A DNA stretch of 64,000 bases from Hypanus sabinus (GCF_030144855.1 NC_082732.1:23622001-23686000), one strand, 5' to 3'; shown: positions 24,137-49,400, counted from the first letter of the stretch. Program-made: numbers and translations. The notes: generated by a model from the letters alone, not told the origin.

Positions 24137-24451
24137 TTAGTAGCATTTGTTTCCTCCCAATTCAGTTTTGGAACCCACAGGATTATTGGTGAACTTCAGT
24201 TGTTTTTCCCCAGCTAGCAGTAGATCCAGTGTCAGGTTTAGATCTTCAAAACTGAGATTTGCCAAGAAGTTCCTCTTCAGTTCGGTCTGCACTGTTGATT
24301 CACAACTCACTGTAAACTGCAGGCAGGTGGGCAGAAACTGGTAGCAAAGCCAGTCAAATAACTCCTCCGCAGTGATTTCTGCTAAAGCGAGAAGCTCTGA
24401 ATTCCACAGTTGTAGGTGCAACATGTTTGCGGCAATTCTTGCTGATAGGCG
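24137..24451 (-). CDS. PINK1: PINK1 exon 8, coding part (C-terminal extension, stop TAA at 24137-24139)
   Basis: RLSARIAANMLHLQLW...LFDWL...ELKRNFLANL resembles the PINK1 C-terminal region; polypyrimidine + TAG acceptor. Confidence 0.93.
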   Translation of the reverse strand, partial: RLSARIAANMLHLQLWNSELLALAEITAEELFDWLCYQFLPTCLQFTVSCESTVQTELKRNFLANLSFEDLNLTLDLLLAGEKQLKFTNNPVGSKTELGGNKCY

Positions 24452-24689
24452 CTATAAATGGGAAGAAGAAGAGTGAAAAGCTGTATTTATAGTCTATAGT
24501 AACACTGAGATTACAAAGCAAATTGTAAGAGATTTTAGGAGGCTTATGTAGTGGAAAGTAGCAAGTGAACAAGAATCATAGCAAAGCAATTACATGAATT
24601 TAAGATTAGAAATCTTAAATTCTGGAATAACATACCCAACACATGAAAATGAATAGCAGCCAAGAATTCCAATTATATTATTTTAATAA

Positions 24690-27600
24690 TTTGAAGAGGA
24701 TACATTGGTTGTAATCTTCCAGAATTCCATAGATTCTAGAACAGTTCCCACTCATTGGAAGGTAGCAAATGTAACCGCATTATTAAAGGAAGAAAGGAAG
24801 AAGACAAAACTACAGAGCAGTCAGACTGAAATCTGTATCAGAGATAAATGTAAATCCAATAAGGAAATGGCAACATAGCACAGAAAATAACAAGACTAGA
24901 CACAATCAATATGTATTTCTTTAGGGAAAATCATGCTTAATAAACCTGTTCATTTGTGTTGAGGTTTCATCTAGCACAGTAGATCTAGAAAAAGTTATGT
25001 GGGGTATTTGAACTTTCAGAAACCCAAGGTGCTGCATGACATTATTAAACAAAATTAGGGTCTACTGTATTAGTGGTAATTTATTAGTAGGGATTGAGAT
25101 TTGTTATTGGCCAAAAAATCCAAGGAGTAAATACATCATTTTTCCATTGGGAGGCTGAGAGTCATGGAGTACTGCAGATATGGGTGCTGGGACACCAACT
25201 GTTTACAACTGAAATCAATAATTTAAAAAGGAGGTGAACCAAGTGCAATACATTCAAGTTTGCTGATGGTAGAAAGCTGATGGCAATATGGCTCTGGATC
25301 ATTGGAATTTCTTCTGGGGAAGGTACGACCTGAACAAAGGGGACGGGTTGCACCAGAACAACAGGGGAACCAATATCCTCACAGGCAGGTATCCTACAGC
25401 TGTTTGGGAGGGTTTAAACTACCTTGGCAGGGGGATGGGAACCAGAGGCACAGGGTTGAGGATGGTGCAATTGGTTTACAAACAGAGCTAGTGTGTAGTG
25501 AGACTGCTAGCAAGGACAGGCTGATGATAGGGCAAAATTGCAAATCATAGACATCACAGTTACAGATTGGCTTGCATGACGTGTTGATATCACTAAATCA
25601 TGGCTGAAAGATTCTAGCTAGCAGCTTAACGTCCAAGGATAGACATCGTTTTGAAAGGATAGGTAGGTAGGAGGAGGGGGTGGTGTGGCTCTGTTGGTAA
25701 AAAATGAAATCAAATCATTAGAAAGTGACATAGGATCAGAAGGTGTAGAATCATTGCAGGTCAAGCTAAGAAACTGCAAGGGTAAAGAGATCCTGACTGG
25801 AATTACATACAGATCTACAAAGAATAGCAAAAATGTGGTTTACAAATTGCAACAGGAGATAGAGAATGTATGTCAAAAGGGCAAAGTTATGACAATCATG
25901 GGGGATTTCAATATGTAGGTATATCATGTTGGTGTTCAGTCCCAAGAGGAGGGAATTTGTAGAATGCCCATGAGATAGTTTTTTTAGAGCAGCTCATGAT
26001 AGAGCCTACTACGGGATCAGATATTCTGGATCTGGCATTGTGCAACAAAATGGAATTGATGAGAGAGGTTAAGGTAAAGGAATCCTTGGGAGGCAGTGGT
26101 CATAATAGAATTCACCATGAAATTTGAGAAGCTAAAGTCAGATGTATCAGTAATACAGTGGAGTAAAGGGAATTACAGAGACACGAGAGGAGCTGGCCAA
26201 AACTTATCAGAAAGGAACACTAGCAAGGATGACAGTGGAAACCTAGAAACATAGAAAACCTACAGCACAATACAGGCTCTTTGGCCCACAAGGTTGTGCC
26301 GAACATGTCCCTACCTTAGAAATTACTAGGCCTACCTATAGCCCTCTATATTTCTAAGCTCCATGTACCTATCCAAAAGTCTCTGAAAAGACCCTATCGT
26401 ATCCACCTCCACCACCATTACCGGCAGCCCATTCCACGCACTCACCACTCTCTGTGTAAAAAAAACTTAACCCCTCTGTACCTACTCCCCAGCAACTTAA
26501 ACCTGTGTCCTCTTGTGAAGCAGCAATGGCTGGAGTTTCTGGGAGCAATTGGAAAGATGCAGAATAGATAAATCCCAAAGAAGAAGAAATATTCTAAAGG
26601 CAGGATGATACAACAGTGGCTAACAAGTCAAAGCCAACAGAAAAGCCAAATAACAGGCATATAACAGAGCAAAAATTATTGGGAAGTTAGAGGGTTGGGA
26701 AGCTTTTTTCAAAAAAGGCAACTAAAAAAAAATCAGAAAGGAGGAAAAGATGGAATACAAAAGTAGGCTAGCCAATAATTTTTAAGTGGATACCAAACGT
26801 TTTTTTCAAAAACATGAAGTGTATAAGAGTGGTGAGAATGGATTTCGGACAGCTGGAAAATGATGCTGGAGAGGTAGTAATGGTACAATAATCAGCAGTT
26901 TTGGGTCCCTTATCTAAGAAAGGATGTGCTGACATTGGAGAGGTTCAGAGGAGGTTCACGAAAATGATTCCAGGATTGAAAGGTTTATCACATGAGGAGT
27001 GTTTGATGGCTCTGCCCTGTACTCACTGGCATTCAAAAGAATGAGTGGGGATCTCATTGAAACCTATCAAGTGACTGAAAACCATTGAAAGGCCTCAATA
27101 AGTGTTCATGTAGAGAGGATAATTCCTATGCTGGGTGAGTCTAAGACCAGACAACATAGGCTCAGAATAGAGAGACACCATTTAGAATGTAGTTAAGGAG
27201 GAAATTCTTTAGCTAGAGAACAGTGAATCTGTGGAATTCATTGCCATAAGTGGCTTTGGAAGCCAAGTCATTGGGTGTAGTTAAGACAGAGGTGATATTT
27301 TCTTGATTAGTTAAGGGCATGAAGAATACGGAGAGAAGCCAGGAGATTGGGGCTGAAAGGGAAATGGGTCACCCATGATGGAATTACAGAGCAGACTCAA
27401 TGGACCGAACAGACTAATTCTGCTCCTATACCTTACGGGCTGTGAGGAAGTTACTATGAAGCCTCAGAAGACAATGCAAGTTAAGTCAGTGAATGAAAAT
27501 GCACTTGGCAAATTACAGGAAATAAATGGAAAGGTAGAGCTTTTTTAAAAAATGATGAAAGGTTAAATGTTGGCATTCAAGTGGATGCATTTATACACAA

Positions 27601-28100
27601 TCACTGAGAGCCAATATGTAATTAGGATGACATACAGTTTTTCATTGCAAAAGGTTTGAGTACAAAAATAGAGTCACCTTGTTCCAAGTGGACAGGACTC
27701 TGGTGAGACTATATCTGGAACAGTTTACCTTAGGAAGCATGTAGCTGTGACATGGGGATGACAGCGAGTATTTACAAGTTTGATCTCTGCAATGGCAGGT
27801 TTATCACAGTTGAGGAGAGATTATGCAGACTGGGTCTATACTCTCATATTTAGAAGAATAAAAGTAAAAAATTAAAATGTAAAAAATATTTACAAAGTAG
27901 ATACGGGAATGATGCTTCCCCTGACTGGTGTGTCTCAAACCAGAGTGACAGTTTCAAGGAATTAACTGTTCAGGTTAAAGAGAAAAGAAATTTCGTCACA
28001 CCCTAAAGATCCTGAGAATCCTCAAATGCCAAGAATATTCATGACAGTGACTTGGAGAATTTAAAATGTCAAGGGAATCAAAGAGATATTGCAAGAAATT
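24690..28100 (+). mobile_element. Cluster of nested CR1 LINE fragments (ORF1 end, APE endonuclease, RT/3' ends; inverted CR1 tail at ~26240-26515)
   Basis: DGLHQNNRGTNIL (ORF1 esterase end), GGGVALLVK...IMGDFNM (APE), and 3' tails at ~27440; many stops and frameshifts. Confidence 0.8.
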
Positions 28101-28320
28101 GATGCCCCACATTAATCATCTTACTAATTGGGGGAGGGGAGGGAAGTAAGCTCCTCACAAACATCAAGGTATATGACTAAATTGGAAAACTGTTCCACAG
28201 GTCAGTCAAGCAATAGTCAGAAAATCCTTCTGGTGAGGAATGTACTCAATCAGATCTTGGTGATTTATATACCACAGCCTGTTGTCCAGTGATCCCAGCT
28301 GTAAAGATATTACTCTAGAA

Positions 28321-28401
28321 TAGGGGTTTCCAACCTTTTTTTATGTCATGGACCCCTACCATTAACTGAGGGGACCATGGACCCAAGGTTGGGAACCTCT
28401 G
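28321..28401. mobile_element. 81-bp hAT-type MITE
   Basis: TIRs TAGGGGTTTCCAACC / GGTTGGGAACCTCTG; 8-bp TSD CTCTAGAA/CTCCAGAA. Confidence 0.8.
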
Positions 28402-28659
28402 CTCCAGAACAAGATGAAGCTGGAGTTTGGTTCTGACATTGATTAAGCTGCCACATTTTAGTATACACTGTAACTTTAAATTTGTGGCCCAGCAAGGCTC
28501 CACATTTAAAAGTAAAATAATGAATGAGATAGAAAACAAAAGTAAATTCAAGAACTACCTACCACATTCTCCAACTGGAATTAGTACAGAGAAAGGTTGC
28601 TATTTGCATTATTACATACAAGTTCAGATTAAATTCCAACAAAGATAAATCTACCTAAT

Positions 28660-29475
28660 GACACAACAAAATGCTGGGAGTTACTCAACAGGTCAGACAG
28701 GATCTATGGAGGAAGAAAGAATAACCTCCATCCTTCTCACTTAGACCATAAGACACATGAGCAGAATTTGACCATTCAGACCATCAACTCTCCTCAACCA
28801 TTTCATTATGGCTGATGTATTTTCCCTCCTTGTAACCTTTCATGCCCTGCCTAAGTAAAAATCTCTCAATCTCCACCTTAAATATACACAGTGACCTGGC
28901 CTCCACAACAATCTGTGGCAATGCATTTCATAGATTCACCATCCTCTGAATAAAGAAATCCCTCATCTCTGTTCTAAATGGTCATCCCTCTGTTCCTAGG
29001 CTGTGCCCTCTGGATCTAGGCTCCCTTACTACAGGGGACGTCCTCTCCATATCCACTCTGCCTAGGCCTTTCAACATTCAATAGGTTTCAATGAGATCCC
29101 CCAACCTGTCCTTCTAAATTCCAGCAGGTACATGCCCAGAGCTATCAAATGCTCCTCCTACAATAACCCTTTCATTACCAGAATTCTCTTGAACCTCCTC
29201 TGAACTCTGTCCAATGTCAGCACATTCAACATCACATTTGCCTTCATCTTCCCTCCCCCACCTAGTTTCACCTCCCAGCTCTTTCTTCCCCCCTCCACCT
29301 CCTTTTTCCCTCTTCTTTTCTAGTCCTGATGAAGGGTCTCAGCCCAAAACATCAGTTCTTTATTCCTCTCCATAGATGCTGTCTGCTGAATTTCTCTTTT
29401 GGGGGGGGGGGGGCCGGGGGGGTTGCGGTTTTTATTACTCTGGATTCCCAGCATCTGCAGAATCTCGTGTTTATT
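28660..29475. mobile_element. Penelope-like inverted termini enclosing a minus-strand CR1 fragment (~28745-29220)
   Basis: pLTR unit on minus at ~28660-28715 and on plus at ~29320-29475; CR1 tail between. Confidence 0.65.
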
Positions 29476-29626
29476 TATGGATGAACATGTTAGTGATCCT
29501 AAATTAGACCGAGTTACAGAACATTACCTTAAAATGTATCATTTTAACCATGCAAGGATAGGAAAGTGTATTGATCTCCTACAGAAATTGTTAATAAATA
29601 ATTTTGGATGTAATTACTGTACTCAC

Positions 29627-29863
29627 TTTCTTGGGGTCTCTGCACAACAAAAGCTTCACCACCTGTCTCACATTTCTATGAATGTAGTTTGGCAAAGGTG
29701 GTAGCTTGTTCTCTTCATAATTCCTGCTCTCCAGATAATTCATTCCACGTGGATAAAAGGGATTCGGAAGTCCCAGAATCTCATAGGCTAGTGTACCCAC
29801 TGTCCAGGCATCAGATTTGCTATAATCAATGGATGCTCTGGGTCCAGGCACTGCTGTACAAAT
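29627..29863 (-). CDS. PINK1: PINK1 exon 7 (237 bp)
   Basis: IDYSKSDAWTVGTLAYEILGLPNPFY: kinase subdomain IX; CAG|ATT acceptor and AAA|GTGAGT donor. Confidence 0.97.
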
Positions 29864-30014
29864 CTGTAAAAAGGACAAGAGCAGGGGTTTGATTTAAGCC
29901 ATTGTGCATCAACATTCACACTTGTTTTGAATGTTGCTGTGAAAATGCATGTTGCGACTCAAACACAAACCATGCACAAGTGCCAGGTTCGTTTTGTGCT
30001 CCCCCAGCACTTAC

Positions 30015-30142
30015 CTCAGGAGCCATGAGACAGGTATTTCCTCCCCGGTCAACCTCCATACTGGTAAAGGGAAGCTTCAATCCACGATCACAATTTGCCA
30101 GACAGCAGCCAAAATCTGTGATCACTAAACGTGGCCAGCCAA
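30015..30142 (-). CDS. PINK1: PINK1 exon 6 (128 bp)
   Basis: [11 protein letters not shown]...[12 protein letters not shown]: DFG to APE activation segment; GAG|GTAAGT donor. Confidence 0.97.
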
Positions 30143-30796
30143 CTAAACAGTGGACAAAAATAGAAGAATTGCATTTATATTTTTGCTTCACAAACTGCCT
30201 TTATTAAAAAAGTTACAACTGAGGGCAAAGTGATACAAAAACTTTCTGAAACATGTTTAAGCAAATGCCTCCTGGGGTATCATAGAAATAGTATGGTGGG
30301 TACTGCATGAATAATTGACAGTAAACACTTTCATCTTTTACAAAAATGTAAAACAAATTTATATTGTATACATAAGGTCAGATCTTGCCCCTATATGGTA
30401 GTATGTTTGGGAATTCTGCACAAACCTTGTACTTCTTACCTTCATTTTCTTTGATGAGTCATGAAAAGTTTGCAAGTCTCTTTTAGAAAAAAAAAGGAGC
30501 GAAGAAATATTTGTGGTAGTGGGATAAAAAAAAACTTCAAAATGATGAAGCCACTACACATAATGTCTCCTTTTAGTTAGACATCGGTATATAATCAGCA
30601 ATGGTCTCTATGCCATTCACTGAACTGCTGTTGTATAGATTGTATTTTCAATTTTTGTGAATGTTATACTTTACCATTGTTTATTCTTTCCTGTTAAGAT
30701 TTTACTGAACATTTTATTGAACAAAAATTGTTTAAAGTCATTAAAAGTTTCAGAAATACTAACCTTGATAGTTTACAAAAATTTCCTTGCCCCTAC

Positions 30797-30960
30797 CTGA
30801 ATCGAACTCCACCAGAATATTATCAGCCTTCAGGTCTCTGTGTGCAATGCCATTCTGAACCAGATGATCCACTCCCTCTAGTAACTGAAGAATCATCTGC
30901 ACAGCATACCCACTCCAGGGGCTGCACACTTCCAAGTACTGCTTCAGGGTACAAGGATAG
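30797..30960 (-). CDS. PINK1: PINK1 exon 5 (164 bp)
   Basis: YPCTLKQYL...[15 protein letters not shown]: HRD catalytic loop; canonical splice sites. Confidence 0.97.
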
Positions 30961-31369
30961 CTAAGATACAAATGACAACTATCAGCTACAATTGGTTTGT
31001 CCAAAATGTACTGAAAGCCTGTTAAGAGATCCCACATCCACAAAGGCACCCAAAAATTTAACAGCACCTCATTGCATCGGCCCAAGGCCTTTTCTTCTAC
31101 TTTCATTTTCTCCTCCCACACCCCCCCCAACAATAAGGAACTGATTCTTGATTCAGAGATGCTCCTTTGTTCCAAAATCTGATTTCTTTAAAACATAATG
31201 TCAACAAAGCATGCAAGCGAATTATGTAGCCATGGAAACTTCAAAGTAAAGTTCTACGTTAAATCAATCTCCTCTGTGCACAGGAATGAAGGTATAGATC
31301 CCCAGCATGTGCATTCCAGTCCTATTGTCACAGAGATCAGCAAACTCAATATAGAACTGATGATCAGAG

Positions 31370-31615
31370 TCATGTGAAGCCATGGAAGCAGGTGGTGGAT
31401 GGTCACCACCAGCTGGTGCATATCACAAGTCTTGCTTATGCGACCATTGATAGGAGGCAAATTTTAAAGAGTATGGTTAATGGCTGGGATCAACCATCTT
31501 ATAAAGACACTGCCCAGAAGGAGGCATTGACACATCACTTCTGTAGAAAAATTTGCCACGAACAATCGTGGAAAGACCATGAATGCCCATGTCATACAAC
31601 ATGGCACATAACAAA
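31370..31615 (+). mobile_element. RTE-related SINE-like repeat (second copy on minus strand at ~60565-60905)
   Basis: Shared aaagacactgcccagaag...cacttctgt(a/g)gaaaaa core in two places, resembling RTE/BovB-type leader sequence. Confidence 0.6.
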
Positions 31616-32309
31616 CAAACAAATATGCCACAAAATCCCAACCTATTCTTTTTTTTAATTGCAGTTCACAGCATGTTTTGCTCAAGAACTAGTCCTTGGA
31701 ATGCTGCAACAAAACCCTATCCCAAGCTGCTTACAATACTATTACCAAGCATAGTGTGAGTATTAACTGAAATTATCTTAAGTATGAGCAATTATAGCTA
31801 ATAGATCTCAACAGTTTTTCATTCATTCCTGAGACAGCAAGAAAGGAGCAACAGTGAATCCACACACATGCAACATCCAGTAGCTATAAAAATCACATGT
31901 ATAATAGATCTGACTTGTGTACGGATTGCAAGTTCCTCGACAGGTATTGTAGCCCCACAGCTTTAATACGGTCACCATTTTGCAAAGATAATTTCTTTTT
32001 AAACAAAAGATAGACAATTCAGATAGATATAAAAAGAGGTCTGTGTAATAATCTAAAAATCAAAACCTTTCACATTGCACCATTATTTATAGTATTGTTC
32101 CAATATCAATGCAAGTTCTGTGAATCAAGAGGTAGAATACCTATATCCTGCTTATGTATGGTTATAGGCCCTTATGTTCAAAAACTCAGTCCATCTCTTG
32201 TGTTCTACACTGTGGCATATACTCATCCGTTCTATCATGGTCAGTTCAGGCTGCCTTCCCTTCCAATGTCAAGCACGTTCAGTCAGTAAGCATGGTTTAA
32301 ACTACTTAC

Positions 32310-32492
32310 CTTTTCATCACCAGAAAGAGGGTGTGGCTGCATCCAAACCCATTGGGATTCAAACTTTTGGGCAGTACATCAGGATACTCCTCCCATGCTC
32401 CGGTCAACAGAGGAAATTCAGCTGTAAATGCCCGGACAATCTGGATAATGTTTGGATGTGGTTTCAGCTTCCTCATGTTATAATAGGAGGAT
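32310..32492 (-). CDS. PINK1: PINK1 exon 4 (183 bp)
   Basis: LKPHPNIIQIVRAFT...YPDVLP...TLFLVMK, including the ubiquitin-binding insertion 3; AG|GTAAGT donor. Confidence 0.96.
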
Positions 32493-35238
32493 CTAACCAA
32501 AGTAAGAGAGAAAAATCATCTAGTTCAGGAGAAAATTACAACTAATGTCTGTGGCCTAGTATCTGTAGAAGAGATAACATTCAACATTATACCTTAATTT
32601 TTTTTGCATTTCCTGTCATTGCTTGTTTATCGATGTACAGATTTTGTAGGGTCATAGAATCTGACAACATACAGAGATACTTTGACCTAACTTGTTTATG
32701 CTGATTGTGATGCTCATATCACGAATTCCCGCTTTCTATCCTTTCACAGACTTACTTTTTGTTTTCTGTAAAAACTTGTTTTTACAGTAATTCTTTCAAT
32801 TCTGAAGTGTCCTGACATGAAACAATAATTTACTTTCCTATTTTACCTTATTACTGAATTTTCTTTTTCTACTTAAAATATTTCAATTGAAATTGCTGTT
32901 GCACTCCAACAGGTTGGTGGAGTTGCATTATTCACAGAATTCCTATCTCGACTCATGGTTTTTTCACTCCATGAATGTTTGTGTATGCAAACTTCAATCC
33001 CAAGTAGAGTAGCTCTAGTTCTGTTAACTTGTTCAAGCTTTGGGGGGTGGGGGGGGGGGGAGATCTTCCTAATTTCTTCTCTAATCTTCTACTGATTACG
33101 TTTAATCAATGTCCCTTAATAAACCTCTTTTGCATCCTCTCCAGCACTATCACATCTTTCCTATACATGTGTTGATGAGAACTCAATGTAGGACTCAAAT
33201 TATAAGAAACAATTGCTAAAAGTAATATTGTCATTAACATTCCTTGCCAGCAATGTACCTTAGTTTTTGTTTGTATTTCCTGTTATTGCAGTTTATTGAT
33301 GTACAGATTTACAGGGTCATAGAATCTGACAACACGAAGAGATACTTGTCTCAAATCGTCTATGATGATTGTGATGCTCATGCCACAAACATTTTAATGT
33401 CTCCATCACCTCATCATTCTGTATGGAGAAACTCACCTCAAATCTTCTTCAAATTCTCAAATTGTAGATTGCCCTACCTGGGAAAAAGACTCTGATCATC
33501 AACCCCTTCTTCCATGTTCCTCATAATCTTATAACCTCTATAAGATCAGCCTATAACATTCCACTGAGAACAAATCCAGTCTATCTAATCTCATTACATA
33601 ATGAAAACTCTCCATTCCAGGCAACATCCTAGTGACCATCTTCTACATTTCTTCCTAATATTACGACGTCCTTCTTGTAGTGCAGCAACAATAACTGTAG
33701 ATATGACTGATGCGTCTATTGTACAGCTGCAAAACTGTTCCAACTGTAACACCTCACATAAATTCTCTTCTGTAATCTAGCCATTATGTTGCTGTTTTCA
33801 GAAAACTATGAACTTGTAGATCAAATAGATTTTATCTTTTTGTATATTAACACCAAGATTCCTGCCATTAACTGTATGTATCCTGCCAGCATCTCTAAAT
33901 ACACTGTCTCACATTTGCCTGGATTAAATTCCATCTGCCGCTGCTCTGCTCAAATTTCAGCTGATCTATTTCCACTTATACAACCTACAACTCCACCAAT
34001 ATTAATGTGTAATTGTGTTCTATCTCTTGCGGTCATTGTAGTACCTTTCTTACAAGTTCACATTCTGACTCCCATCGGGGGAGTCTCATCATGGGCATTA
34101 GCCTCCCCAGCATAGAGGACACCTTCAAAAGGTGATGCCTCAGAAAGGCAGCATCCATCATTAAGGACTCCCATCACCCAGGAAGTGCTCCTCCATCAGG
34201 GCGGATATACAGGCGCTTGAAGACATACACTTAATGTTTTAGGATCAGCTTCTATCCCTCAACCTTTCTGGACAATGAACCAACCCATGTACACTACCTC
34301 ACTATTTTTGCACAATGAGTATATATATTCTTATTGTAATTTATGGTATTTTCACTGTAATGCAGTCATGAAACAAACTTCACGACACATTAGTGATAGT
34401 AAACCTGATTCTGATATACTAGAAACTTATATGTTTAATATTTCTCATCTCTACTGAGACTGATTCTATATCATGATTGCAGTGAGCTTGTCCTTTATTA
34501 AAGAACTACCTCACTTAGCCTTCTACGCATCTGTCTTTGGTTACCTAGCGACCATGTTCCTGTAATGGTTTATTTAACTGAATACGTTAATATATTTGAT
34601 TCAATTTGCATGGTCGCTTGTATAACCTTTATCACTTCTAGTCCTTTTGCCAGTCATGTGAAATGTGTGTTCTGATTATCAATCAATGATGTTGTCATTG
34701 GAAGTGATGGTCTAATGCCCATCTTAGTGTTTTATACACTATAGGGCATAATTGGCCTAAAACCACATTACAAATTAGGACAAGGGAACAGTCGGGAAAG
34801 GTTTAAATTAGATTGTCAAATGGGTTGGAATCCAAGGATACAATCAGAAGGGATAAAGCTAGGATGGAAATAGAACACAGGGGTTCCGCTCAGGAAAACT
34901 CAGAGGACAGAGAGAAAGAAAAAGGCAGAAGTACAGTTTATCAGTAAGGGACAGAGGATACAAGCACAAATGTATTCTAACAGGAGTCAGAATGAAGAAA
35001 ATGGATAAAATAAGACTAAAGACTAGCTAAATTCTCACAGCATTTTAAATAACAAACAGAAATTTTCTCTGCACTTTTACTTTAAATCAGACAAGCAGGT
35101 AAACTTAGATGACTGAATGTAACAGAAAAAGAAAAATCCACCCCATACCAACAGAATTTAACCTGCTGGTATATCTACAGTCATTTATTTCAACATATTC
35201 ATACTAAAAACAGGCATTAATAAAGCACCAATACATAC

Positions 35239-35345
35239 AGAACTAATCCTTTGGCTTTATTAAACTCTCCAGATAAAGCATTAGGGATGGTTGGCACCAA
35301 CTCCTTCCCCATTGTTCTCAGGATAGCATCACTGGATGACTCTGT
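35239..35345 (-). CDS. PINK1: PINK1 exon 3 (107 bp; TESSSDAILRTMGKELVPTIPNALSGEFNKAKGLV)
   Basis: Not in the ORF track; read manually. Contains the S228-equivalent autophosphorylation serine and alphaC glutamate (ELVP); TGCAG acceptor, CT|GTATGT donor; phase 2 joins exon 4 in frame. Confidence 0.93.
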
Positions 35346-37164
35346 CTGCAATGAGAAATTTACAATAAGGAGCTTGGAGGGTGGGGGGGGGGGGGGGGGG
35401 CATCCAGTTTAAGATCGCACCACATAAGCTGGGCGACAACTGACTGGTAGTTCATTAAGCAAGAAATACACTTAATACTTAATAACACTTTTTCCTATTA
35501 AGTGATTACCGCAAACAATGTAGAGGCAAATGAAGGCCAGGCTGACTCGTGGCGTTCATGTGCAAAGCAAAATCTGAGCATGGCATGCTTGAGAAGAAGA
35601 GGTTGGAGTGAAGTTGAGGCATATTCAAATGTGTGTGAGTCAGAACCAGAGATGGAGTTGGAGCAAGTGGAGAAATATTGGAGCAGAGTTGTTTTGGAGC
35701 CTAAACCAAGAGCAAAGTTGGAGCAATCTAAGCACCAGGCCGAATTGGACAGGTAGGCTACAGGTCGGAACTCGGTGGCGGAGTCCTGGGTCCCAGTGTG
35801 GGACACAACCCGGTGCTGGCCCAGATGGACTGAAAAGGTGGGTGTTGCAACCGCAGGTGAAGGCTGTGCCGCTTCTGCTCGCTGCTCCGCTGAGGCTGTA
35901 AGACTGCTCCGGGCTTCATGTCTGCAAGCTTTGCAGCGATTTGCCCCACTGTATAACAAATTGAGGTTGAGGCTATGGGCTTCATGTCTATGGGCTTATT
36001 TTTTGATCTACATGCTGTTATTTGCTTTTACTGTTTGCACAATTTGTGTTCCCCCCAACACACTGGTCTTTTTTTTAAGCTAGGTTTTCTCAGGTTTCTT
36101 GCTTTGAGGCTGCCTGTAAGCAGACAAAGCTCAAGGTTGTATAATTTATACATACTTTGATAATAAATGTACTTTGAACTTCGATATCATGGCAATAGTA
36201 TTTTGTCACCTAATAATCTTCATTATATGAGGAACCAGAATCAAGACACAAAGACGTAAATGCAAGCCATGACCCCACTCAGAAATCTACAAATTGTTAA
36301 TAAAGTTTCCAACAAATGATCTCTTTTCTTGCATTAAATTTGATACTTTAACTAAAGCAAGTAGTGTATTAGTGGCTGTTTTGTAAATTAAAGAGGACTA
36401 TGTGGAGAAAAAAATACAAATTTGACTTCAGTACCTGGTGGGAGTATAGAAAAGACCCAAATACCCCTTTCCCCTGAGACATAAATGGAACTTGATTCAG
36501 TTCCCAGTAGGTTCCTTCCTTGCTGAGAGAAGTGTTGATGTGAGGGAAAATTGAAGTCAGATCTCCTTGGTTTGCAGTATTAGAGGAGTCAGAGATATGA
36601 CACAGAAACAGGCTCTATAGCCCCCCAAATCCATGCCAACTATCAACCACACTTTTTACATTAAGCCTACCCTAACTGCTTTTTTCTCTTAATACATTCC
36701 CATCAGTTCATCTCTGGACTTTGTGGAGAAAACTGTGGTACTTAAGAGGAAACCTACATTGTCACAGGAGGAACACTCAAACTTTGTATGATCAGCACCG
36801 AACCCCAGTCAGAGCAGCAATGATGTCACTGGGCATTTCTAGGTGAGAAAAGTGCTAACTGTAAGATAACATCTCTACAGCCACCTATTAGTCTGAAGGA
36901 ATGATCTATCCTCTGCAATTGATTTTGGTACCACTTAGGAAGAGTTTAAGCGTTCTGCTGTATGGACCCAAAGATGAGGAAAATGCCAGTGGTCAGGTCC
37001 CTATGTACAGTGTGCAGAATCCAACTGCTGTCGATACTTTTGTTATAATTATTTCTCAATCCTACTGTCTCAGTTTTTCTTGAAATAATTTTGAGATTTA
37101 TGTTACTGAAAGTATATGCAGCAATTGAAAAAAATTCTCCCCCCCCCCCCCCGCATTTATTTAT

Positions 37165-37410
37165 TTACAGATACAGTATAGAACACGCTCTTATGGCCCA
37201 ATAAGCTGCACCACATAGCAACCTACATATTTAACCCTGGTCTAATCACAGCTATTTACAACATCCAATTAACCTACTAACCAGTACACCTTTGGACCGT
37301 AGGAGGAAAGTGGAGCAGTCACAAGAAGAATGTACAAATTGCTTAGGCTCAGCCTCAGAATTGAACTCCAAACTCCACGCTGTCATAGTGTCATGCTAAC
37401 CACTACGCTA
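37165..37410 (-). mobile_element. tRNA-derived V-SINE/HE1-like SINE (relatives at ~36590-36830 and ~45395-45655)
   Basis: Shared core cagtcaca.g.agaa.gtacaaa and tRNA-like head ending in gctaaccactac at three loci. Confidence 0.6.
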
Positions 37411-37549
37411 TGATCTGTATTCAAGCTCAATTCTAATACTGCACAAGCCTAAATAGTAATCTTTAGTTTGAGCTCAGATGGGGAATTTTCATTGTAAATC
37501 ATAAATACAAGAGATTCCGCTGATAACTGCAAATATCTGTTTAACTCAC

Positions 37550-37969
37550 GTTCAAGTTCCAAAGCATTTTTAAAGCCAGAGGGTGGCTAGTGTCTCCCAG
37601 GGGCCCGGCTTCCGGTAAGCTGGTGTCCTCCACAGGTCCAGAAGGTGGATCCCTCTCCAAAACTACAAAACTCAGACTTGATGATTCCTGCGAAATTGTT
37701 GAATTATTTATTATTTCGGAACAAATGCTGGAGATATCTGGTACAACAGCAGCTTTCTTTTCCTCATTTTTACTTTCCGGCTGTCGCTCCTTTGTCATTA
37801 TTTTACTGCTCGATTTTGGATTGGCTCCTTCAGAGATAAAGGCCTTGTATACAGCTGCATTACATCCTTTTCCAAGGGGGTCTCCAATCTTGTAATCTTC
37901 TAGACAATGGCCAATAGTGGGCAAAGGTACAGAGTTTTCATACTTAGTTTTCTTTCTTTTAAATTGTGT
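37550..37969 (-). CDS. PINK1: PINK1 exon 2 (420 bp, with expanded insertion 1)
   Basis: LEDYKIGDPLGKGCNAAVY (Gly loop) ... PLALKMLWN (catalytic Lys); GGCAG|ACA acceptor, AAC|GTGAGT donor; open frame throughout. Confidence 0.95.
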
Positions 37970-38570
37970 CTGCCAAATGGAAAAAAACCAGAAAAACAAA
38001 TTTATTAAGAGCAAGGCACAAACTGTAATCAATGGGTGGAAATGGAAATATTTTAAAAAGCACTTTGTTTTAAATGAATTAAAAACCTTCAACTAGCTTT
38101 GCAAGCAGCACTGACAAAGTTTCAAGGCTGCCACTAGCACTTTCATTAGTCCACAGAATTAAGCTGTCACCCTTTACCACTAGCTTTCAGGACAAATGTC
38201 CTTTTCTTTCAATGATAATGTTACTGTTGTTGTTATGGATTGGACAAATGAGTTTATGGATTGTGGATTCCGCCCCCCCACCAGACTTCAGGTTTTTATA
38301 TTCTTTGATTTTTGTCCATTTCTTTTCCTGTTGTTTGAGGGGAGGGAGGTTGGCAGTTGATGTTCTTCTTGTGATCTATTAGATTTTTTGTGTGGGGGAG
38401 GGGAATTTGGAGGTCAATGTTCTTGTTGCGTTTTGAGCGGGGGGGAGTGGGGTTTGGGGGTTGACGATTGAGATGCCGTTCTTTTTTGTGTAGGGAATGG
38501 GTTTGGTGTTTCTCTATACAACTTCTATGTTCTTTATTTTGTGGCTGTCTGGAGAAGACAAACCTTAGAG

Positions 38571-39152
38571 TGTTGTAGTTTGTTGTGCCCCACGCAGAAG
38601 ATTCTTCAAGAAGTGTTAAACTTTAATTTGCAAATCAAAGCTTAGAAAGTCAGTGAGCTAGTCACTGATTGCCCACCGGTCCTTGGACATAGCATTTTTT
38701 ATAGCAATCTCCTGGTTTAGTTGCATTAGCATATCCAATCCAATACAGTTGCGTATCACCAGTACATCAGCTCCTGACTTCCCACTATTGTTTCTACCCA
38801 TTAACTTAATCATGTTCTAATCTACTTTTTGGGCCACATGTTACTTCATCCCTGGCCACAGTTATCTCTTAGCTAGCCTCTCATTAACACACTATTATCT
38901 TCTTATATGGCTACATTCTTAAGTCACTGATGTGTTCAATAGTACAGAGACAATACAGAGATCTCAATAAGTTGGATACATAGTAAGTATAAGTTAGCTA
39001 CATTCTCAAGGCGTTGATGTGTTCAATAGTACAGAGACAAAACAGAGATTTCATTCTCCTACTAAATTGGATACATACACAGCAAATAGCAAATACAAAG
39101 CTGACTACATAGTTTTGGTACACAGCAAACAGTGCAACTTTATACTCCAATA
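38571..39152 (-). mobile_element. Solo LTR in PINK1 intron 1 (TA...CA ends)
   Basis: 4-bp TSD AGAG interrupting a LINE 3' tail; minus-strand TATAAAA and ATTAAA; internal ~40-bp direct repeat; similar to 40231-40865. Confidence 0.75.
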
Positions 39153-40230
39153 AGAGTTGCATATGGATAAATGACCCTTTGAAATGATCCAAGGTATACC
39201 TAGGCATCATCCTAAATAATCAAAACGGATGTATGACAGGGATCTTGCTAATTTCTTAGTGACATTTCTTCTAAATTTTTAATTTGTTCCACCACCCTTG
39301 AAAAGGTATAGAATCCCCCTTTTGAAATACTAGCCCACAGGCAGCAATTAATTCCACATTATATTGGTCAAATCTGATATTAAATAAAGGAGCATTCAAA
39401 ACAGTATCTAGAAATGATTGGATTCTACAAGTATTAGAAAAGTTTCAGTGATCACTTAACAGTTAATGGAACAGTAATTTCCAATGACTGCGAGTAGCAG
39501 AATGTACAGATGGGTGAATCTTGGATCAGAGAAGATTTAAGGAAGTCCTGATAGATGTGTTGACAACAATAAAACATCCAAGCAAAGCAAATACAAATAA
39601 ATTGTTCCCATTTAAGAGTACAGAACCAAAAGGGCACAGATTGAGGTAATCAGAAGAAAAACCAAAAGACACATGAAAGGGGTTAACACACACACACATA
39701 CACACATCCCTACTCATAATTAGCACTGCATGGACAAATCAATGAACCAAAATAAACTTCAAGAGAACCAGGGAATTAAATAAACAGGATTGCTATTACA
39801 AAAAGAAAAATTTAATCAGCTGAATGGGTTCTTTCACTGCTGTAATGATTCTACGAAATTAGAAACTAATGTCTTAAGTGGATTTTTCTTTCAGTAACTC
39901 AACAAGGTAATTGGCGCTGAGCTACATGAATTTGGAGCAGTAACATGAAAGAGATTTATTATACATGCAAGTAAATTTTAAAGCCGTAATAAATCTGTTA
40001 TTGTCAGCCAAGTTTTCTTGCACTGCAAATGTAGAATCTCAGATGTGAAAAAAAACAATGATCAACGCAAATTTACAATGTCAGCGTGTAACTCGCTTCA
40101 ATTTACAGCGAATAGAACCAGCGACTAGTCAAGAAATCAGACAGTGGTGGCATATAAAATTGCTATTCGCCGCAAAATTGATGTTGAGAAATATCATGGT
40201 TAATTAAATCCGTAGTTTCCATCAGACACG

Positions 40231-40865
40231 TGTCGTGGTTACTTGAAATGACCAGGAGACGCAGACAATTCTTCGAGAAGTTTAAACCTTTATTTGCAAA
40301 CAAAGGCTGAGGCAATCAATGAACCTGTCACCGAAAGCCCACCGAGCTCCGGTGTACAGCATTCTTTATAGTAATTTCTTATCTCAGTTACATTTCGGTT
40401 TCATCAGCATACCCAATCAAGTTTTAATTGCATATAATCTATCCATTAACTAATCAATCGCTCTTGCCCAGCTCTCGGTGCGCCACCATTATGTTTCACC
40501 CGTTCGCATTGGGGCCTTATTCCTGGCCAAGGTTATGTTTTCCAGACAACCTCCCTCACATTACATTCCTGCTCGTCCCATCCTGTCCGACACCGTTATC
40601 TCATACTAAACAAAGGTTGAGTGTAATACATGGGGTATATTTCCGCTAATAGTGCTGCTAAACAGGTGTTCTGTAAGTGCCATAATATGCAGCTAAGAGA
40701 GTGCAATGTATCTAGTTAAAACAACACATAGCAAAATGTGTCTAGTAAAATAATACATAGTAATATTCAGTACCTAGAAGTGATTACATAGTATAGTAAA
40801 TAGCTAATACATAGTGATTAAATTTCAGGTATATATAATGATTATGTCAGGTACATTTCTCAATA
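40231..40865 (-). mobile_element. Solo LTR in PINK1 intron 1, ~56 bp from the exon-1 donor (TA...CA ends)
   Basis: 4-bp TSD CACG; minus-strand TATAAAG (~40364-40370) and AATAAA (40289-40294). Confidence 0.75.
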
Positions 40866-40921
40866 CACGCGAAACTGGGTACCAAGACGACGTAAGGGAA
40901 TTTGGTCTGAGATTCCTTTAC

Positions 40922-41233
40922 CTGCAACTGGTCGCACACAGTAGTGTATGCCCTTATCTCCTCCGCCTGCTGTTCGACGAAACCCAGGCCCAGTCCGAAG
41001 GCCAGCAAGGTCCCGCGGCCCCGTCCAAACGCTTGGCGCTGCAGCTGGGCGGCCAGGCTGCCAACCGAGTGGCGGAAGAACCGGTAACGGGCTGGCAGCA
41101 CGCACTGAAGCGGCTGCCTGACCCGAGGCCGCAGAACCGGGGCGCTCGGCCCGACCCTGACCGCGGGGGTGACATGTGGCAAGGCCAACCGGCCTAGCTG
41201 CCAGCCGCGGGCCAGCAGCTTGCGCATCGACAT
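40922..41233 (-). CDS. PINK1: PINK1 exon 1, coding part (mitochondrial targeting sequence, OMS, TM segment)
   Basis: MSMRKLLARG..., RFFRHSVGSLAAQLQRQ and LLA|FGLGLG (PARL site equivalent); CAG|GTAAAG donor. The eight exons sum to 1866 nt = 621 aa + stop. Confidence 0.96.
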
Positions 41234-41849: not shown

Positions 41850-44496
41850 TTTTTAAATCTTTTTATTAATTTTTAAGCAAACATAAATGAAACATGAATA
41901 CAAAGAGTTTGAGAGTACATAGTTAATAGTTTAAGCAGAGATTCAAATATATAATAATCAATATATATAACCTCCCAAACTCATAGTATTTATGAACAAA
42001 AGAAATAAAAAGAAAAAAAAAACAAAAAAAGAAGAAAAAAAACACTAACCAACATGGGCCATTGCATAATGTCAGATATATACAGTAGTGCCAATAACTC
42101 CGAACCTCTATCCAAATAATTACGGATAATAAAAGTGAGGTTTAGGAAAAGACAATTTAACTCATATGAAAATGTTGAATAAATGGTCTCCAAGTTTCTT
42201 CAAATTTAACTGAAGGATTTATGCTGATGACTTATTACTTTTTCTTTCAAATCTGTCTACATCCTTACCTCCAATGTTTTCACTTCTTGACAAGTTTAGC
42301 CAGCTCTCTGAATATAAACTTAATTTACATAAGAGCGAACTTTTCCCAATTAATAAAGAAGCACAAGAATTAACATTTCGTGATCTCCCTTTTAAAGTAA
42401 TAATCAATTTACTTACCTTGGGATTACAGTCACAAGGAAGTTTAAAGATCTCTTTCATGAAAATTTTGTCAATTTTTCATATACTATAAAACAGAGTCTG
42501 TTACAATGGTCACCTCTATCTATGTCTTTGGTAGGTCGTATTAATGTTGTTAAGATGTATGTTCTCCCTAAACTTTTATATTTACTTCAATCAATCCCAA
42601 TTTTTATTCCTAAATCTTTTTTTGATTCCTTAGACTATATTATTTTGTCATATCTGTGGAAGAATAAGCGCTCTAGAATTAATAATCTCCAAAAACCTAA
42701 AAAAGAGGGTGGCATGGCTTTACCTAACTTTCGTTTATATTATTGGGCAGCCAATATACGTTGTGCTACCTTTTGGTCATTTTTCCATAGCCAGCCCGAG
42801 TGCCCTAATTGGGTGGCAATGGAGTTGAGCTCCACTAAAGAATTATCTATCTCTGCACTTCTTGGCTCTGTACTCCCTTGTAGTTTGTCCAGATTAATAG
42901 TTAATCCTCTTGTTAGACACACTTTGCGTATATGGGCTCAGTTTAGGAAATTTTATGGTTTCCATGGTTTTTCCTTTTCTAGCCCTATCTTACATAGTCA
43001 CTTTTTTTTAACCTACTACGTATGACTCAGCATTCCATGATTGGTATAGAAAGGGCATTAGACATTTTGAAGATCTTTTTATTGATAATCGCTTCGCTTC
43101 TTTTCAACAGCTCTCTGCTAAGTTCAATATGCCCAATGCTCATTTTTTTAGATATCTCCAAATTAGACACTTTATTACTCCATTAATTCCTAATTTCCCT
43201 GAAATGCCTGAGAAAAATGTTATCGACTTATTTCTTTCTATTAATCCACTAGGTAAAGGTTTAATATCATTTATTCGTGATAAATTAGCAGTCTTACGAC
43301 GTGTCCCTGTGAATAAAATTAAAATGGCATGGGAGCAGGATTTAAATACCTCATCTGATGAGACTTGGGACTCGATTCTCAAATCAGTTAATTCAACCTC
43401 TCTTTGTGCTCGCCACTGCCTTTTACAGTTTAAGATTGTGCATAGAGCCCATATGTCTAAATCTAAATTATCTCGATTTTACCCTATCATTAGTCCGCTT
43501 TGTGATAAATGCAAAAGGGGCGAGGCCTCTCTCATTCATATGTACTGGTTTTGTCCTAGCTTGGAGAAGTTTTGGAAAGATGTCTTCATAATGTTATCGT
43601 ATATTCTGAATCACCACCTAGAACCACCTTTAATTGCTTTGTTCGGTTTCTGGGGTGAGACAGATTTACGTCTGAGTTCGACTAAGTGTCGAATATTATC
43701 TTTTGCCTCTCTCCTGGCTAGACGTTTAATCCTCCTTAGATGGAGAGATGTTGCCCCGCCCAAGCATGCTCAATGGCTTAACGATATTATGGCCTGCTTA
43801 GACCTTGAAAAAATTCATTATTCAGTTCTTAATTCGGATTTAAAGTTCCATAAGGTCTGGGGACTTTTTATTGAGTACTTTAATAACCTTTCTCTTAACT
43901 AAGGTTTTTTTGTCGGTCCCTTGCTTTCAGCTCTTTTTTTTTGGTAGTAGGCATTAATATCTTCTGTTGCTAAGTGTATTCACAGTTTTGGGGGTTTGAA
44001 TGTCCTGATTTATACTCTCTATATTGTGTTGTGGTTGGTCTGGAGTTTTTTTTTGTTGTGGGGCTTGGGGAGGATACTAATTTTACAAGTCTTCAATTTG
44101 GATGCATTTTCAATTACGTATCTTTCTTTGTATCATATTATTATTGTATGTTTATTTTTGCACTGTATCAATGTTCTTCATTTTGATCTGGGTTTTTTTA
44201 TCTGTAGCTATGTAGAAAATGTATAAAAAAACTAATTTAAAAAAATTAACTTAAGGATCAAAAACAACACTTCTAATTTTTTCTAAGTTCAAACAAGAGA
44301 TAGTTTGAGAAAACCACTGAAATACAGTTGGAGGATTAATTTCTTTCCAATTCAATAAAATAGATCTTCTAGCCATTAATATAACAAATGCAATCATTCG
44401 TCGAGATGAGGAGGATAAACGACTATTATCCACCATTGGTAAACCGAAAATTGCAGTAATAGGATGCGGTTGGAAATTGATATTCAGAACTATTGA
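41850..44496 (-). mobile_element. 5'-truncated L1/Tx1-like LINE (outer; split into ~41850-42218 and ~44242-44496)
   Basis: HPITAIFG...ARRSILLNWK...CLNLEKIR; T-rich tail on +; 13-bp TSD GACTGCTTCTTTC (41837-41849, 44497-44509). Confidence 0.8.
42219..44241 (+). mobile_element. 5'-truncated L1/Tx1-like LINE (inner), ORF2 from YADD to C-terminus, frameshifted
   Basis: Starts at YADDLL; SLVGRINVVKMYVLPKLLYL, GGMALPNFRLYYWAA, CDKC...HMYWFC zinc knuckle; A-rich tail; ~17-bp imperfect TSD AAA(T/A)TTAACT(G/T)AAGGAT. Confidence 0.9.
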
Positions 44497-46426: not shown

Positions 46427-49400
46427 TGTTATGAATGTACCACAGCTCTGAGGGGCCGAAGGGTGCGGGGGAGCCCCCTCCTTTGTGAGAATCGCAAGAG
46501 CATTATTGGGTTGGGTCAGAGGACCCAGGAAATGAGAGAGAGAGACCTGGCCATTGTCTCCTGGAGACCAAGTTTGTGGATTGGGGACTATGCTACGTGC
46601 AAGCCCTCGGGCAAAGTGGGCTGGTTGAGAGAGAGATTGCATCACCCCAACCTGATTGACATCTACTACCCGGCGAGTTAAGATAAAAGGGGGGGGGGCT
46701 GTAGGGACAGCCCCTCAGATGCACCAGAAGAAACGCTAGCGATCCCATAATAGCGGGAAGCCACGTGCGTTCGGTTCCCTTGCCTGGGGGGCTGGTGGCT
46801 GGTACCACGGAAAACGACTTGGAACTAACAACGGGGAACCAACTCCCCCCGACTCAACAGATTGGCCTCATAAAGACCCGGGCAAGTTTCAAACCGTCTC
46901 TCTCTTAAACCCAAAGAGCTGCAGCTTGAAAGGACAGTGACTTTTATCTTTCCATCGGACAATACAATATCCCCTAGACAAACGATAGAGCTATTGCTTA
47001 ATTGATGATTATTATTGTACCTGCGTTTTTAGATTGAGTACTGATGACGTATTTTATCTGAATGTCTGTATTAATCTTATTTTTGTGCCCCTTTATAAAT
47101 AAAGACTTTTAAAAATAGTACCATCAGACTTCAACAGGCCTCTCTATCTTTGCTGGTAAGTGACCCAGTTATGGGGTTCGTAACAACAATTGGGGTTCTC
47201 GTCTCGAGATTTGAAACCAAATTGGGGAGCCAGTGAATCGGGCTTGTAAGTCCAAACTTGGATCTGGTACGCGAGTAGCCAGACGGGAAACCAGCAAAGA
47301 TTGACATGGATGAATTTATAGAAAACCCGACTCTGGAGGCGCTAGATGCGGCCACCAAATCAGACTTGGTAAATTTGGCAAAGGGGTTAAACCTCGCAGA
47401 GGTGAGTTCGTCCATGAAAAAGCGGGAGGTGCGAAGGGCAATAACTCAGTATTATATCAGGAAGAATGTGTTTGCAGCTGAGGTATTGGAAAATATCCCT
47501 GAAAGGGTACCAGCTAGTGGGACGGCTCAGTTAGAGTTGGAGAAATTAAAGCTGGAACATGAAATCAAGTTAAAGCAGCTGGAAGCAGCCGAGAAAGAGA
47601 GAGAGAAAGAGCCGAGAAAGAGAGAGAGAGAGAAAGGGCCGACAAACAAAGGGAGCATGCGCGCCAGCTAAAGGAGTTAGAGGTTAAACAGGATCAGGAG
47701 CTCCAGCTAAGGGTGTTAGAGGTGAAAAGGGAGTAGGAAAGAGCTGAGAAGCAAAGAGAGCATGAACTTCAGTTAAAAAAGCTGGAAGCAGCTGAGAAGG
47801 AGAAGGAGAGGGCTGAGAAGGAGAGGGAGGCAGAGAGACAGAGGAAACATGACTTGGAGATGGAGAAGTTAAAGCAAGAGCAACGCGGTCAGGGGTCAGA
47901 CCGAGAGGAGCAGTTTGATGTTAGTTGGGCGTTGAGGTTAGTACCCCCGATGGAGGAGACGGATGTTGATAGTTATTTCTTGCTTTTTGAAAAGGTGGCA
48001 GTGAATCAGGAGTGGCCCAGAGCACAGTGGGTGGCGTTGTTACAAAGTGTGTTAAAAGGGAAGGCACAGCAGGCATATACGGCGTTGTCCATGGAGGAGG
48101 AGAGTTATGACAAAGTAAAGGTGCCCACTCTCCGGGGTTACGAGCTAGTACCTGAAGCCTATAGACAAAAGTTCAGAAATTTACGGAAAGGATGGAATCA
48201 GACGTATACTGAGTTTGCCCATGAGAAGGGTGTGCTCTTGGACCGTTGGTGCACCACAGAAATAGTGGGCAAGGATTATGGGCGTCTCAGGGAGTTAATT
48301 CTGATTGAGGAATTTAAAGGTTGTGTTCCGGAGGAGATCCGGATGTATTTGAATGAGAAGCCGAGTAAGTCCATCTCAGAATTTGCTAGGTTCGCAGATG
48401 AATATGCCCTAACCCACAAGACAAAGTTTTCCTCGAATAAAAGTTCCCCGAGAGACCGTGGGAACGATCGAGAAAGTCCGCCGGCTGAAGCAGAGGTCCC
48501 ACTGGGAGCTAGTGGTAAGGTTGAGGGGGAAAGGCCAGACGGCCAGCGATTTCAGGGCTTGACCTGTTTTAATTGTGGGAAGAGCAGGCATGTTGCGTCT
48601 CGTGCTTTGCTCCGAGGAGGGAGACGGGAAAAGGGAAAGCAGCAGTCCCTTTCGGATGTGCTGTGGTAATCAGTAAATCGACAAGAGAGCCCCGGGTAGA
48701 CAGAGTACGACACGGGTCTGAGACTTGTCTGTCACACGGAGCTGTGTCTTTGAGGAAGGGGGACACACCAATTCCCGTACGAATCTGGAGAGACATGGGG
48801 GCTGAGCTGTCGTTGATCAGCCGTAAGGTACTAGAATTTGGTCAGAAGACGAGAATGGTATCTGTAAAGGGAATAAGTAAAAGGATAGAAATGGTGGCCT
48901 TACATGAGGTCATTAAGGATTGTGAGCTGGTGTCTGGACCCGTTGAAATAGGGGTGCCATCAGAATTCCCGAGAACTGACGCGGACGTCCTTCTCGGTAA
49001 TCATTTAGCATGTGGTAAGGTTTGGGCAGCCATGACGAGGACCGGCCAGCCGGTGAGTGTTGAGGCTTCGCCCCTAGAGTCCCTGACCTATCCTGCATGC
49101 GCGATCACTCGCAGAATGTTGAGACAGGCAGCTGAGAACGAGAGCAGTTTAAATCTGGCCAGTTTTGATTTGGTCGAGACTTTTCTACCGACCCTGTACC
49201 ACGAGGGTTTAGAGGGTGGTAAAACGAAGAGTAGTAAAGTGAAAGAGGGTAAGGGAGCGGAGGTAGATCTGCCCTTAGCGAGGAGAAAGGTCCTAGAGGC
49301 AGAAAATAAAGATGAGGAACCGATAGAGCAGTTAAGAGGTCCAGAGTTGGACAGGGATGATCTGTCTGGTTTGGCAGAACTGTTTGAGGAAGTTGAAACT

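Follow-up and report, generated by a model that had tools for sequence, protein, structure and literature searches.

Among the described motifs closest to the element analysed here are the Atg8-interacting (LIR) motifs of mitophagy proteins. Optineurin, which acts as PINK1 does in PINK1-dependent mitophagy, has the LIR core S177-F-V-E-I; that of BNIP3 and NIX, S-W-V-E-L, is flanked by phospho-serines. BNIP3 and NIX are dedicated receptors with Trp in the aromatic (Theta) position, whereas PINK1 is a kinase whose known route into autophagy runs via phospho-ubiquitin, Parkin and OPTN/NDP52. PINK1 is also said, to go by the title of a 2010 paper, to associate with LC3; a full-text literature search found no paper on an LIR in PINK1 or on insertion 1 (Ins1) of elasmobranch PINK1. 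To our knowledge Ins1, the loop between strands β2 and β3, is the one part of the PINK1 kinase domain that has no assigned function, and this holds for the human protein too. According to the LIR review, the optineurin motif is phospho-regulated, by TBK1; Ser/Thr or acidic residues at positions -1 to -3 enhance binding, phospho-effects extend as far as -8, acidic or phosphorylated residues normally act most strongly at -2, and an aromatic residue in the second core position (Gamma) is tolerated only sometimes. The same review describes binding that dispenses with the aromatic residue: the CLIR of NDP52 (I-L-V-V) binds LC3C via LC3C-specific residues.

In human Ins1, phosphorylation of T185 and S187, directly before an LL pair, was mapped after depolarisation with CCCP. 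Deletion of residues 180-209 leaves the phosphorylation of ubiquitin and Parkin intact, with negligible effect on activity in cells; thus the loop is available for functions other than catalysis. Tribolium PINK1 is largely without Ins1, and the papers on the Hsp90/Cdc37 and TOM complexes describe the loop as probably unfolded and loop swaps as of no help to expression.

The window, a 64,000-nucleotide stretch of DNA from the Atlantic stingray Hypanus sabinus, contains on its minus strand an orthologue of PINK1, a gene implicated in mitophagy and in Parkinson's disease. PINK1-like pieces are visible in the minus-strand ORF listing, and tblastn with the RefSeq PINK1 of H. sabinus (P0024, 621 amino acids) together with a search for splice boundaries places eight coding exons in 24137..41233 (Table 1). 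The sole GT-AG spliced model translates into P0024 at every residue. In a 60-sequence PINK1 alignment the kinase motifs G137-K-G139, K238, H381-R-D383, D405-F-G407 and P437-E438 are invariant; Pkinase Pfam matches are recorded as well. The architecture is that of PINK1 as well: the alignment to vertebrate PINK1 is full-length, with invariant residues throughout 1-104 and 521-600, and an AlphaFold2 model places a helix at 74-117 and C-terminal helices at 521-605. Exon 2, whose length of 420 bp in the original prediction is reproduced by its splice sites (acceptor ...tttggcag after a pyrimidine tract, donor gtgagt) and by the gene model, encodes the end of the N-terminal extension, the glycine-rich loop and β2, Ins1, and β3 with the catalytic Lys238; its best PDB matches by phmmer are PINK1 chains, in the glycine-rich loop/β2 and PLALK (β3) segments. 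Human PINK1 exon 2 is 288 bp. Exons 4-7 of the stingray gene measure 183, 164, 128 and 237 bp. The human gene has 184 and 163 bp for exons 4 and 5, so that the two together are equal in the two species and the intron between them has apparently shifted by one base; exon 3 has 107 bp in the stingray and 100 bp in human. NCBI names the protein 'serine/threonine-protein kinase PINK1, mitochondrial [Hypanus sabinus]'. The window also holds, upstream of the first PINK1 exon, long, retroelement-like ORFs on the plus strand (42522-43902 and 47306-49971): one is LINE-like (257 amino acids), and others are gag-like, with a CCHC knuckle (CFNCGKSRH), and are followed by a 402-amino-acid ORF.

Table 1. 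Features of the PINK1 gene and of its insertion 1, in window positions
Feature	Position	Strand	Basis
PINK1 coding exons	41233-40922, 37969-37550, 35345-35239, 32492-32310, 30960-30797, 30142-30015, 29863-29627, 24451-24137	-	tblastn and GT-AG model
Exon 2, 420 bp	37550..37969	-	splice sites, spliced model, PDB PINK1 matches to both flanks
Kinase insertion 1 (Ins1), β2-β3 loop, F148-H233, 86 aa	37583..37840	-	frame translation, anchors VYKA/PLALK
Ins1 N-part F148-Q198, polar and charged	37688..37840	-	alignment
Conserved island E199-D211, 13 aa, ESSSLSFVVLERD	37649..37687	-	alignment, translation
Ser cluster S200-S204 (S-S-S-L-S), residues -5 to -1 of the putative LIR, putative phosphorylation sites	37670..37684	-	sequence; human analogy
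FVVL core F205-L208, Theta = F, Gamma = L	37658..37669	-	regex scan
Ins1 C-part P212-H233, two degenerate decapeptide copies	37583..37648	-	translation

The minus-strand frame across 37541-37975 reads ...GKGCNAAVYKA-(86 aa)-PLALKMLWNLN, and phmmer against PDB PINK1 chains finds 41 residues (T174-F214) between the same anchors of human PINK1. The original prediction, that 86 codons separate VYKA from PLALK against about 41 in human, is thus confirmed, and the translation puts Ins1 and its FVVL tetrapeptide exactly where they had been proposed to lie. Expansion of Ins1 is common to all sampled elasmobranchs, not peculiar to H. sabinus: the loop has 83-488 residues in every species of this group, and each of 104 loops retrieved from bony vertebrates has at most 60 (32-50 among those tabulated). 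This sample was assembled by several routes. Exon 2 compared by phmmer with 1.8 billion cluster representatives returned two strong relatives, and a word-indexed search added 16 more PINK1 entries of sharks and rays, together with PINK1 of more than 100 bony vertebrates. Ins1 by itself (86 residues, 5.8-billion-sequence database) generates E-values that are too strict, only Hypanus and Mobula passing; a search restricted to residues 100-262 matched elasmobranch PINK1 exclusively. Searches with the whole protein, with Ins1 only and with the exon 2-3 region returned no PINK1 sequence from a chimaera (holocephalan). Exon 2 also matched (E = 1.7e-6) a protein, P0005, encoded on a 72-kb metagenome contig (L003, ENA ERZ25073780): a long tandem array of a ~53-residue unit that resembles PINK1 β2-Ins1-β3 (..VYEAS..ALAFKMMWN..).

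Three parts can be told apart in the elasmobranch loop. The N-part is nearly constant in length (45-55 residues, usually 53) and contains a block of ~41 residues that is missing from bony vertebrates in the alignment. The short island that follows is the subject of most of what is said below. The C-part is made of decapeptides of the S-E-G-D-I-S-Y-P-L-G type, the final copy running into β3 (sequences compared: P0012, P0016, P0001, P0020, P0015 and P0014). There are ~2 copies in stingray and skates, 7 in a shark transcript contig, ~20 in Scyliorhinus and ~43 in Carcharodon, whose PINK1 reaches 1002 residues. The two degenerate copies of Hypanus are ..VEDTSLPEAG and PLGDTSHPLA..; no tandem repeat was found at the DNA level in Hypanus exon 2, and the repetition is visible in the protein only. 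An array of this kind directly before the strand of the catalytic lysine is an unusual coding minisatellite, tolerated inside a kinase N-lobe. It also generates an asymmetry of spacing: the island stands at a fixed distance of ~53 residues from β2, and its distance to β3 varies ~20-fold, from 21 to 427 residues, which favours a tethered motif over a packed structural element. Human Ins1 is like its stingray counterpart in lying between VYxA and PLAxK and in that a hydrophobic pair comes after a group of S/T residues (E-V-T185-K-S187-T-G-L-L-P); it differs in its 41 rather than 86 residues and in having no aromatic residue, no FxxL and no decapeptide repeats.

The evidence that the island matters comes from its conservation. 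In a sub-alignment of 15 elasmobranch species (drawn from alignment A1), the mean frequency of the majority residue is 0.93 for SSLSFVVL, 0.62 for the Ins1 N-part, 0.61 for the C-part and 0.87 for the kinase domain; shuffling of the loop columns attains the conservation of this 8-mer at a frequency of 5e-5 (P = 5e-5). Five of the six invariant columns of Ins1 fall in the island (E199, S202, L203, F205 and L208), for which the elasmobranch consensus is E-x-S-S-L-S-F-[VTMI]-[VI]-L-[KE]-[RKS]-[DE]. Identity between batoids and sharks is 0.34 in the N-part, 0.67 in the island, 0.30 in the C-part and 0.75 in the kinase. The expectation that a serine-rich segment with FxxL would form a conserved island within a divergent loop therefore holds across sharks and rays. 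Relatedness does not explain this pattern, since all columns of the alignment share one tree. Synonymous codon differences among identical residues are as frequent in the island (0.27-0.33, from a small set of 9-11 codons compared in two Logan transcripts) as in the kinase (0.26-0.27), and L203 and V206 are each specified by three different codons in three species. The normal synonymous rate indicates that the constraint acts on protein and not on DNA; constraint at the nucleotide level, considered as a source of the conservation, is rejected in view of these differences. Taken together, alignment and codon comparison argue strongly that the island is a real short linear motif under purifying selection at the protein level. 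That it functions as a docking or regulatory motif, whichever its partner, is assigned the same high probability.

The loop is present in transcripts. Uninterrupted full-length ORFs that contain all of it are found in Logan contigs of 2.0-3.0 kb from skates (the P0022 cluster, with RefSeq Leucoraja and Amblyraja among its members) and from one shark (P0018), and the RefSeq model of Hypanus PINK1 uses all of exon 2; that the segment might be spliced out is contradicted by its retention in these relatives of Hypanus. Ins1, the island included, is predicted to be disordered. An AlphaFold2 model computed from a 60-sequence alignment assigns no secondary structure to residues 153-229, with pLDDT below 50 (~30-38 across this segment), although this model is of medium quality (mean pLDDT 65, rising to at least 90 in the C-lobe) and is the single one behind the prediction, a run with 20 elasmobranch sequences being uninformative (mean pLDDT 31.5).

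How well does the island fit the definition of an LIR? F205-V-V-L208 conforms to the LIR core, [W/F/Y]-x-x-[L/I/V] (Theta-x-x-Gamma), and contains none of the residues G, P, K and R, which the definition excludes. LSFVVL (203-208) matches the extended xLIR regular expression (PMC5119064); the strict cLIR expression from the same source matches nowhere in P0024, because Leu rather than an acidic residue is found at -2. Sixteen elasmobranch sequences were scanned for xLIR, and all but that of Heptranchias (LNFMIL) match, with LSFVVL, LSFV[IV]L, LSFTIL or LSFIVL. Before the core, Ser is found at -1, -3 and -4, Glu at -6 and an invariant Leu at -2: in the stingray E-S-S-S-L-S stands before the core and E-R-D after it; in most sharks the residues that come directly after the core are K-R or K-K. 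The LIR-like character that was originally proposed thus stands as regards the core, the xLIR match and the upstream Ser and Glu residues, and falls short as regards the strict motif and, in most sharks, the residues directly after the core, which are basic. Nor are such matches rare: a bare [FWY]xx[LIV] core turned up in 33% of shuffled versions of the stingray loop, in keeping with the caution, part of the original prediction, that four-residue LIR cores arise often by chance, and an xLIR match in 4.7%; the specificity of xLIR is poor in general, 23 matches having been counted in shuffled versions of 27 proteins (PMC5119064). The motif in a single sequence being only mildly unusual, the weight of the argument falls on its conservation. 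The only other xLIR match in the protein is LSFEDL (P0024 583-588, window 24239-24256, minus strand), which is conserved (LSFEEL in sharks), falls within a helix predicted for the C-terminal extension and is probably structural. Two further motif classes were tried and rejected for FVVL: the GABARAP-interaction motif, (W/F)-(V/I)-X-V, which has Val where FVVL has Leu at Gamma, and the SUMO-interaction motif, of which FVVL fits neither the parallel nor the antiparallel pattern as commonly given.

Among described LIRs there is a close likeness to that of optineurin, with which the island shares an S-F-V-x-[I/L] core, upstream serines and the F type, which is expected to be weak unless phosphorylated. 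Optineurin differs in its acidic residues at -2/-3 (Leu/Ser in the island), in its Glu at X2 (Val/Ile in the island) and in that its binding has been demonstrated, the island being a candidate. The LIRs of ULK1 and ATG13 and the GABARAP-interaction motif likewise place an F-V-x-aliphatic core in a disordered segment (for the island a predicted one) of a kinase or of a protein from a kinase complex, but with Val at Gamma and a preceding Asp, against Leu (Trp in Leucoraja) and Ser in the island. With BNIP3 and NIX the resemblance is one of concept, an outer-membrane-anchored protein whose Ser-primed LIR brings in Atg8 proteins without an intermediary.

A mechanism can be formulated along these lines. 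After stabilisation of PINK1 on the outer membrane, the island would serve as an F-type, LIR-like docking strand tuned by serine phosphorylation: added as a β-strand to an Atg8-family protein, it would insert F205 and L208 into the two hydrophobic pockets, its affinity would increase once S204, S202 or S201 was phosphorylated, as is the case for the S-F-V-E-I of OPTN, and the long flexible tethers on either side would give it its reach. By analogy with pT185 and pS187 of human PINK1, we infer that the stingray Ser cluster is phosphorylated. A phospho-tuned LIR is the best specific candidate for the role of the island, but a doubtful one, because two lineages break its key residues and the strict motif fails.

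These two lineages are the following. In Narcine bancroftii the island reads SSLSSMAL, Ser having replaced the Theta Phe so that no aromatic residue is left; in Leucoraja erinacea (RefSeq) and in many skate transcripts it reads SSLSFVVW, with Trp for Leu at Gamma (sequences with variants at key positions: P0128, P0026 and the skate Logan members P0130-P0141). Both forms fail xLIR by inspection, and both exceptions stand beside a 15-species alignment in which the Theta F and the Gamma L are invariant. One of the skate transcripts (P0138) also lacks two residues just upstream of the island (DESLSF). For the LIR reading as a whole, then, conservation, retention in transcripts and predicted disorder support what was originally proposed, and the broken key residues of Narcine and Leucoraja count against it.

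The island of ray-finned fishes raises the same difficulty on a larger scale. MAFFT aligns the elasmobranch island without gaps to a ray-finned-fish island, E-S-x-K-C-S-L-V-E-L-K (fishes P0027-P0127). The pattern S-[LIV]-[VIL]-x-[LV] is found in 48 of 66 ray-finned-fish loops, three of which contain another internal aromatic-x-x-[LIV]; the teleost form is S-L-V-[EQ]-L, with Leu where the stingray has Phe. Tetrapods retain remnants only, E-S-S-x-L or x-L-L-P. On this comparison the island seems to be the form that an ancient element of jawed vertebrates has taken in elasmobranchs, and the canonical aromatic core appears to belong to this form only. What elasmobranchs and teleosts have in common, S-Phi-[VTMI]-x-Phi, is the architecture of an LIR (Theta and Gamma conserved, V/T/I at X1, X2 free), and the teleost S-L-V-E-L differs from the S-W-V-E-L of BNIP3 and NIX at the aromatic position alone. 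To judge from its sequence, with Leu at Theta, it could amount to no more than a half-LIR like that of NDP52; binding of that type is the only way in which the teleost and Narcine islands could share an LIR function, and the sequence register of the NDP52 CLIR is a different one. If the function of the island is ancestral, it is not that of a canonical LIR, since the teleost and tetrapod forms are without the aromatic residue.

Survival of the motif after loss of its aromatic residue (S-S-M-A-L in Narcine, S-L-V-E-L in teleosts) is what one would expect of a selected docking or regulatory motif whose partner is not an Atg8 protein: an autophosphorylation cluster or pseudo-substrate, or a site for some other reader protein. 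Taken as a class, these alternatives are possible, if short of probable. They would account for the fact that the most invariant residues, E199, S202 and L203, sit upstream of the LIR core, and for the behaviour of the human loop, in which the S/T residues beside the LL pair become phosphorylated only once active PINK1 accumulates; against a regulatory role is the negligible effect on activity of deleting that loop in cells. In the autophosphorylation or pseudo-substrate version the tethered S204 strand would have the active site within reach, whether in cis or in trans, and could modulate activation. Tethers of ~53 and at least 21 residues make such a reach plausible, and S204, with its hydrophobic strand and basic residues, loosely resembles the strands around Ser65 of ubiquitin (S-T-L-H-L) and of the Parkin Ubl domain (S-I-V-H-I). 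That resemblance is short and was spotted post hoc, however, X1 is Thr in lamniform sharks so that a strict S-x-Phi-x-Phi register is not kept, and PINK1 recognises a folded conformer of ubiquitin, not a linear motif.

Alternatively, L-S-F-V-V-L might be a structural element, an extra β-strand buried on the N-lobe, at a dimer interface or against TOM subunits. Five of its six residues are hydrophobic, the alternation L-x-F-x-V is strand-like, and Ins1 emerges beside the glycine-rich loop, a component of the activation dimer in the insect PINK1 dimer structures. The 20-fold variation of the spacing to β3 tells against such packing, AlphaFold2 finds neither structure nor contact for the island (pLDDT ~30), the Narcine F-to-S and lamniform V-to-T replacements would be poorly tolerated in a packed strand, and the loop, which human cells can do without, is largely missing from Tribolium PINK1; the structural reading is quite unlikely. 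That the island has no specific function, its conservation being due to chance, to the slow evolution of elasmobranch proteins or to an RNA- or DNA-level constraint (e.g., an exonic splicing enhancer in an exon that is unusually long, at 420 bp), draws on the frequency of LIR cores in shuffled loops and on the two lineages with changed key residues, and is very improbable in view of flanks that evolve on the same tree with an identity of 30-34% against 67% for the island (majority frequency 0.93; P = 5e-5), of synonymous differences at the rate of the kinase domain, and of the three codons used for each of L203 and V206.

The phospho-tuned LIR, if correct, would admit of a wider extrapolation: elasmobranch PINK1 might be an Atg8-recruiting mitophagy receptor in its own right. 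Phosphorylation of SSLS, by PINK1 itself or by a kinase of the TBK1 or CK type, would switch the LIR on and bring in GABARAP/LC3 in parallel with the phospho-ubiquitin/Parkin route; the decapeptide array would serve as an adjustable tether, and the teleost S-L-V-E-L would be what remains, as a half-LIR, of a function present in ancestral jawed vertebrates and lost in tetrapods. This full scheme is unlikely as it stands.

What the comparison does provide is a block of Ins1 that is under clear purifying selection in sharks and rays and whose equivalent can be recognised in ray-finned fishes too; its 13 residues can be mutated and offer a definite starting point for asking what Ins1 is for. Should the island turn out not to bind Atg8 proteins, it would still be a candidate cluster of regulatory phosphorylation sites. 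Should it bind them, PINK1 would be a direct receptor like BNIP3, NIX and FUNDC1, with a route to mitophagy that is independent of Parkin.
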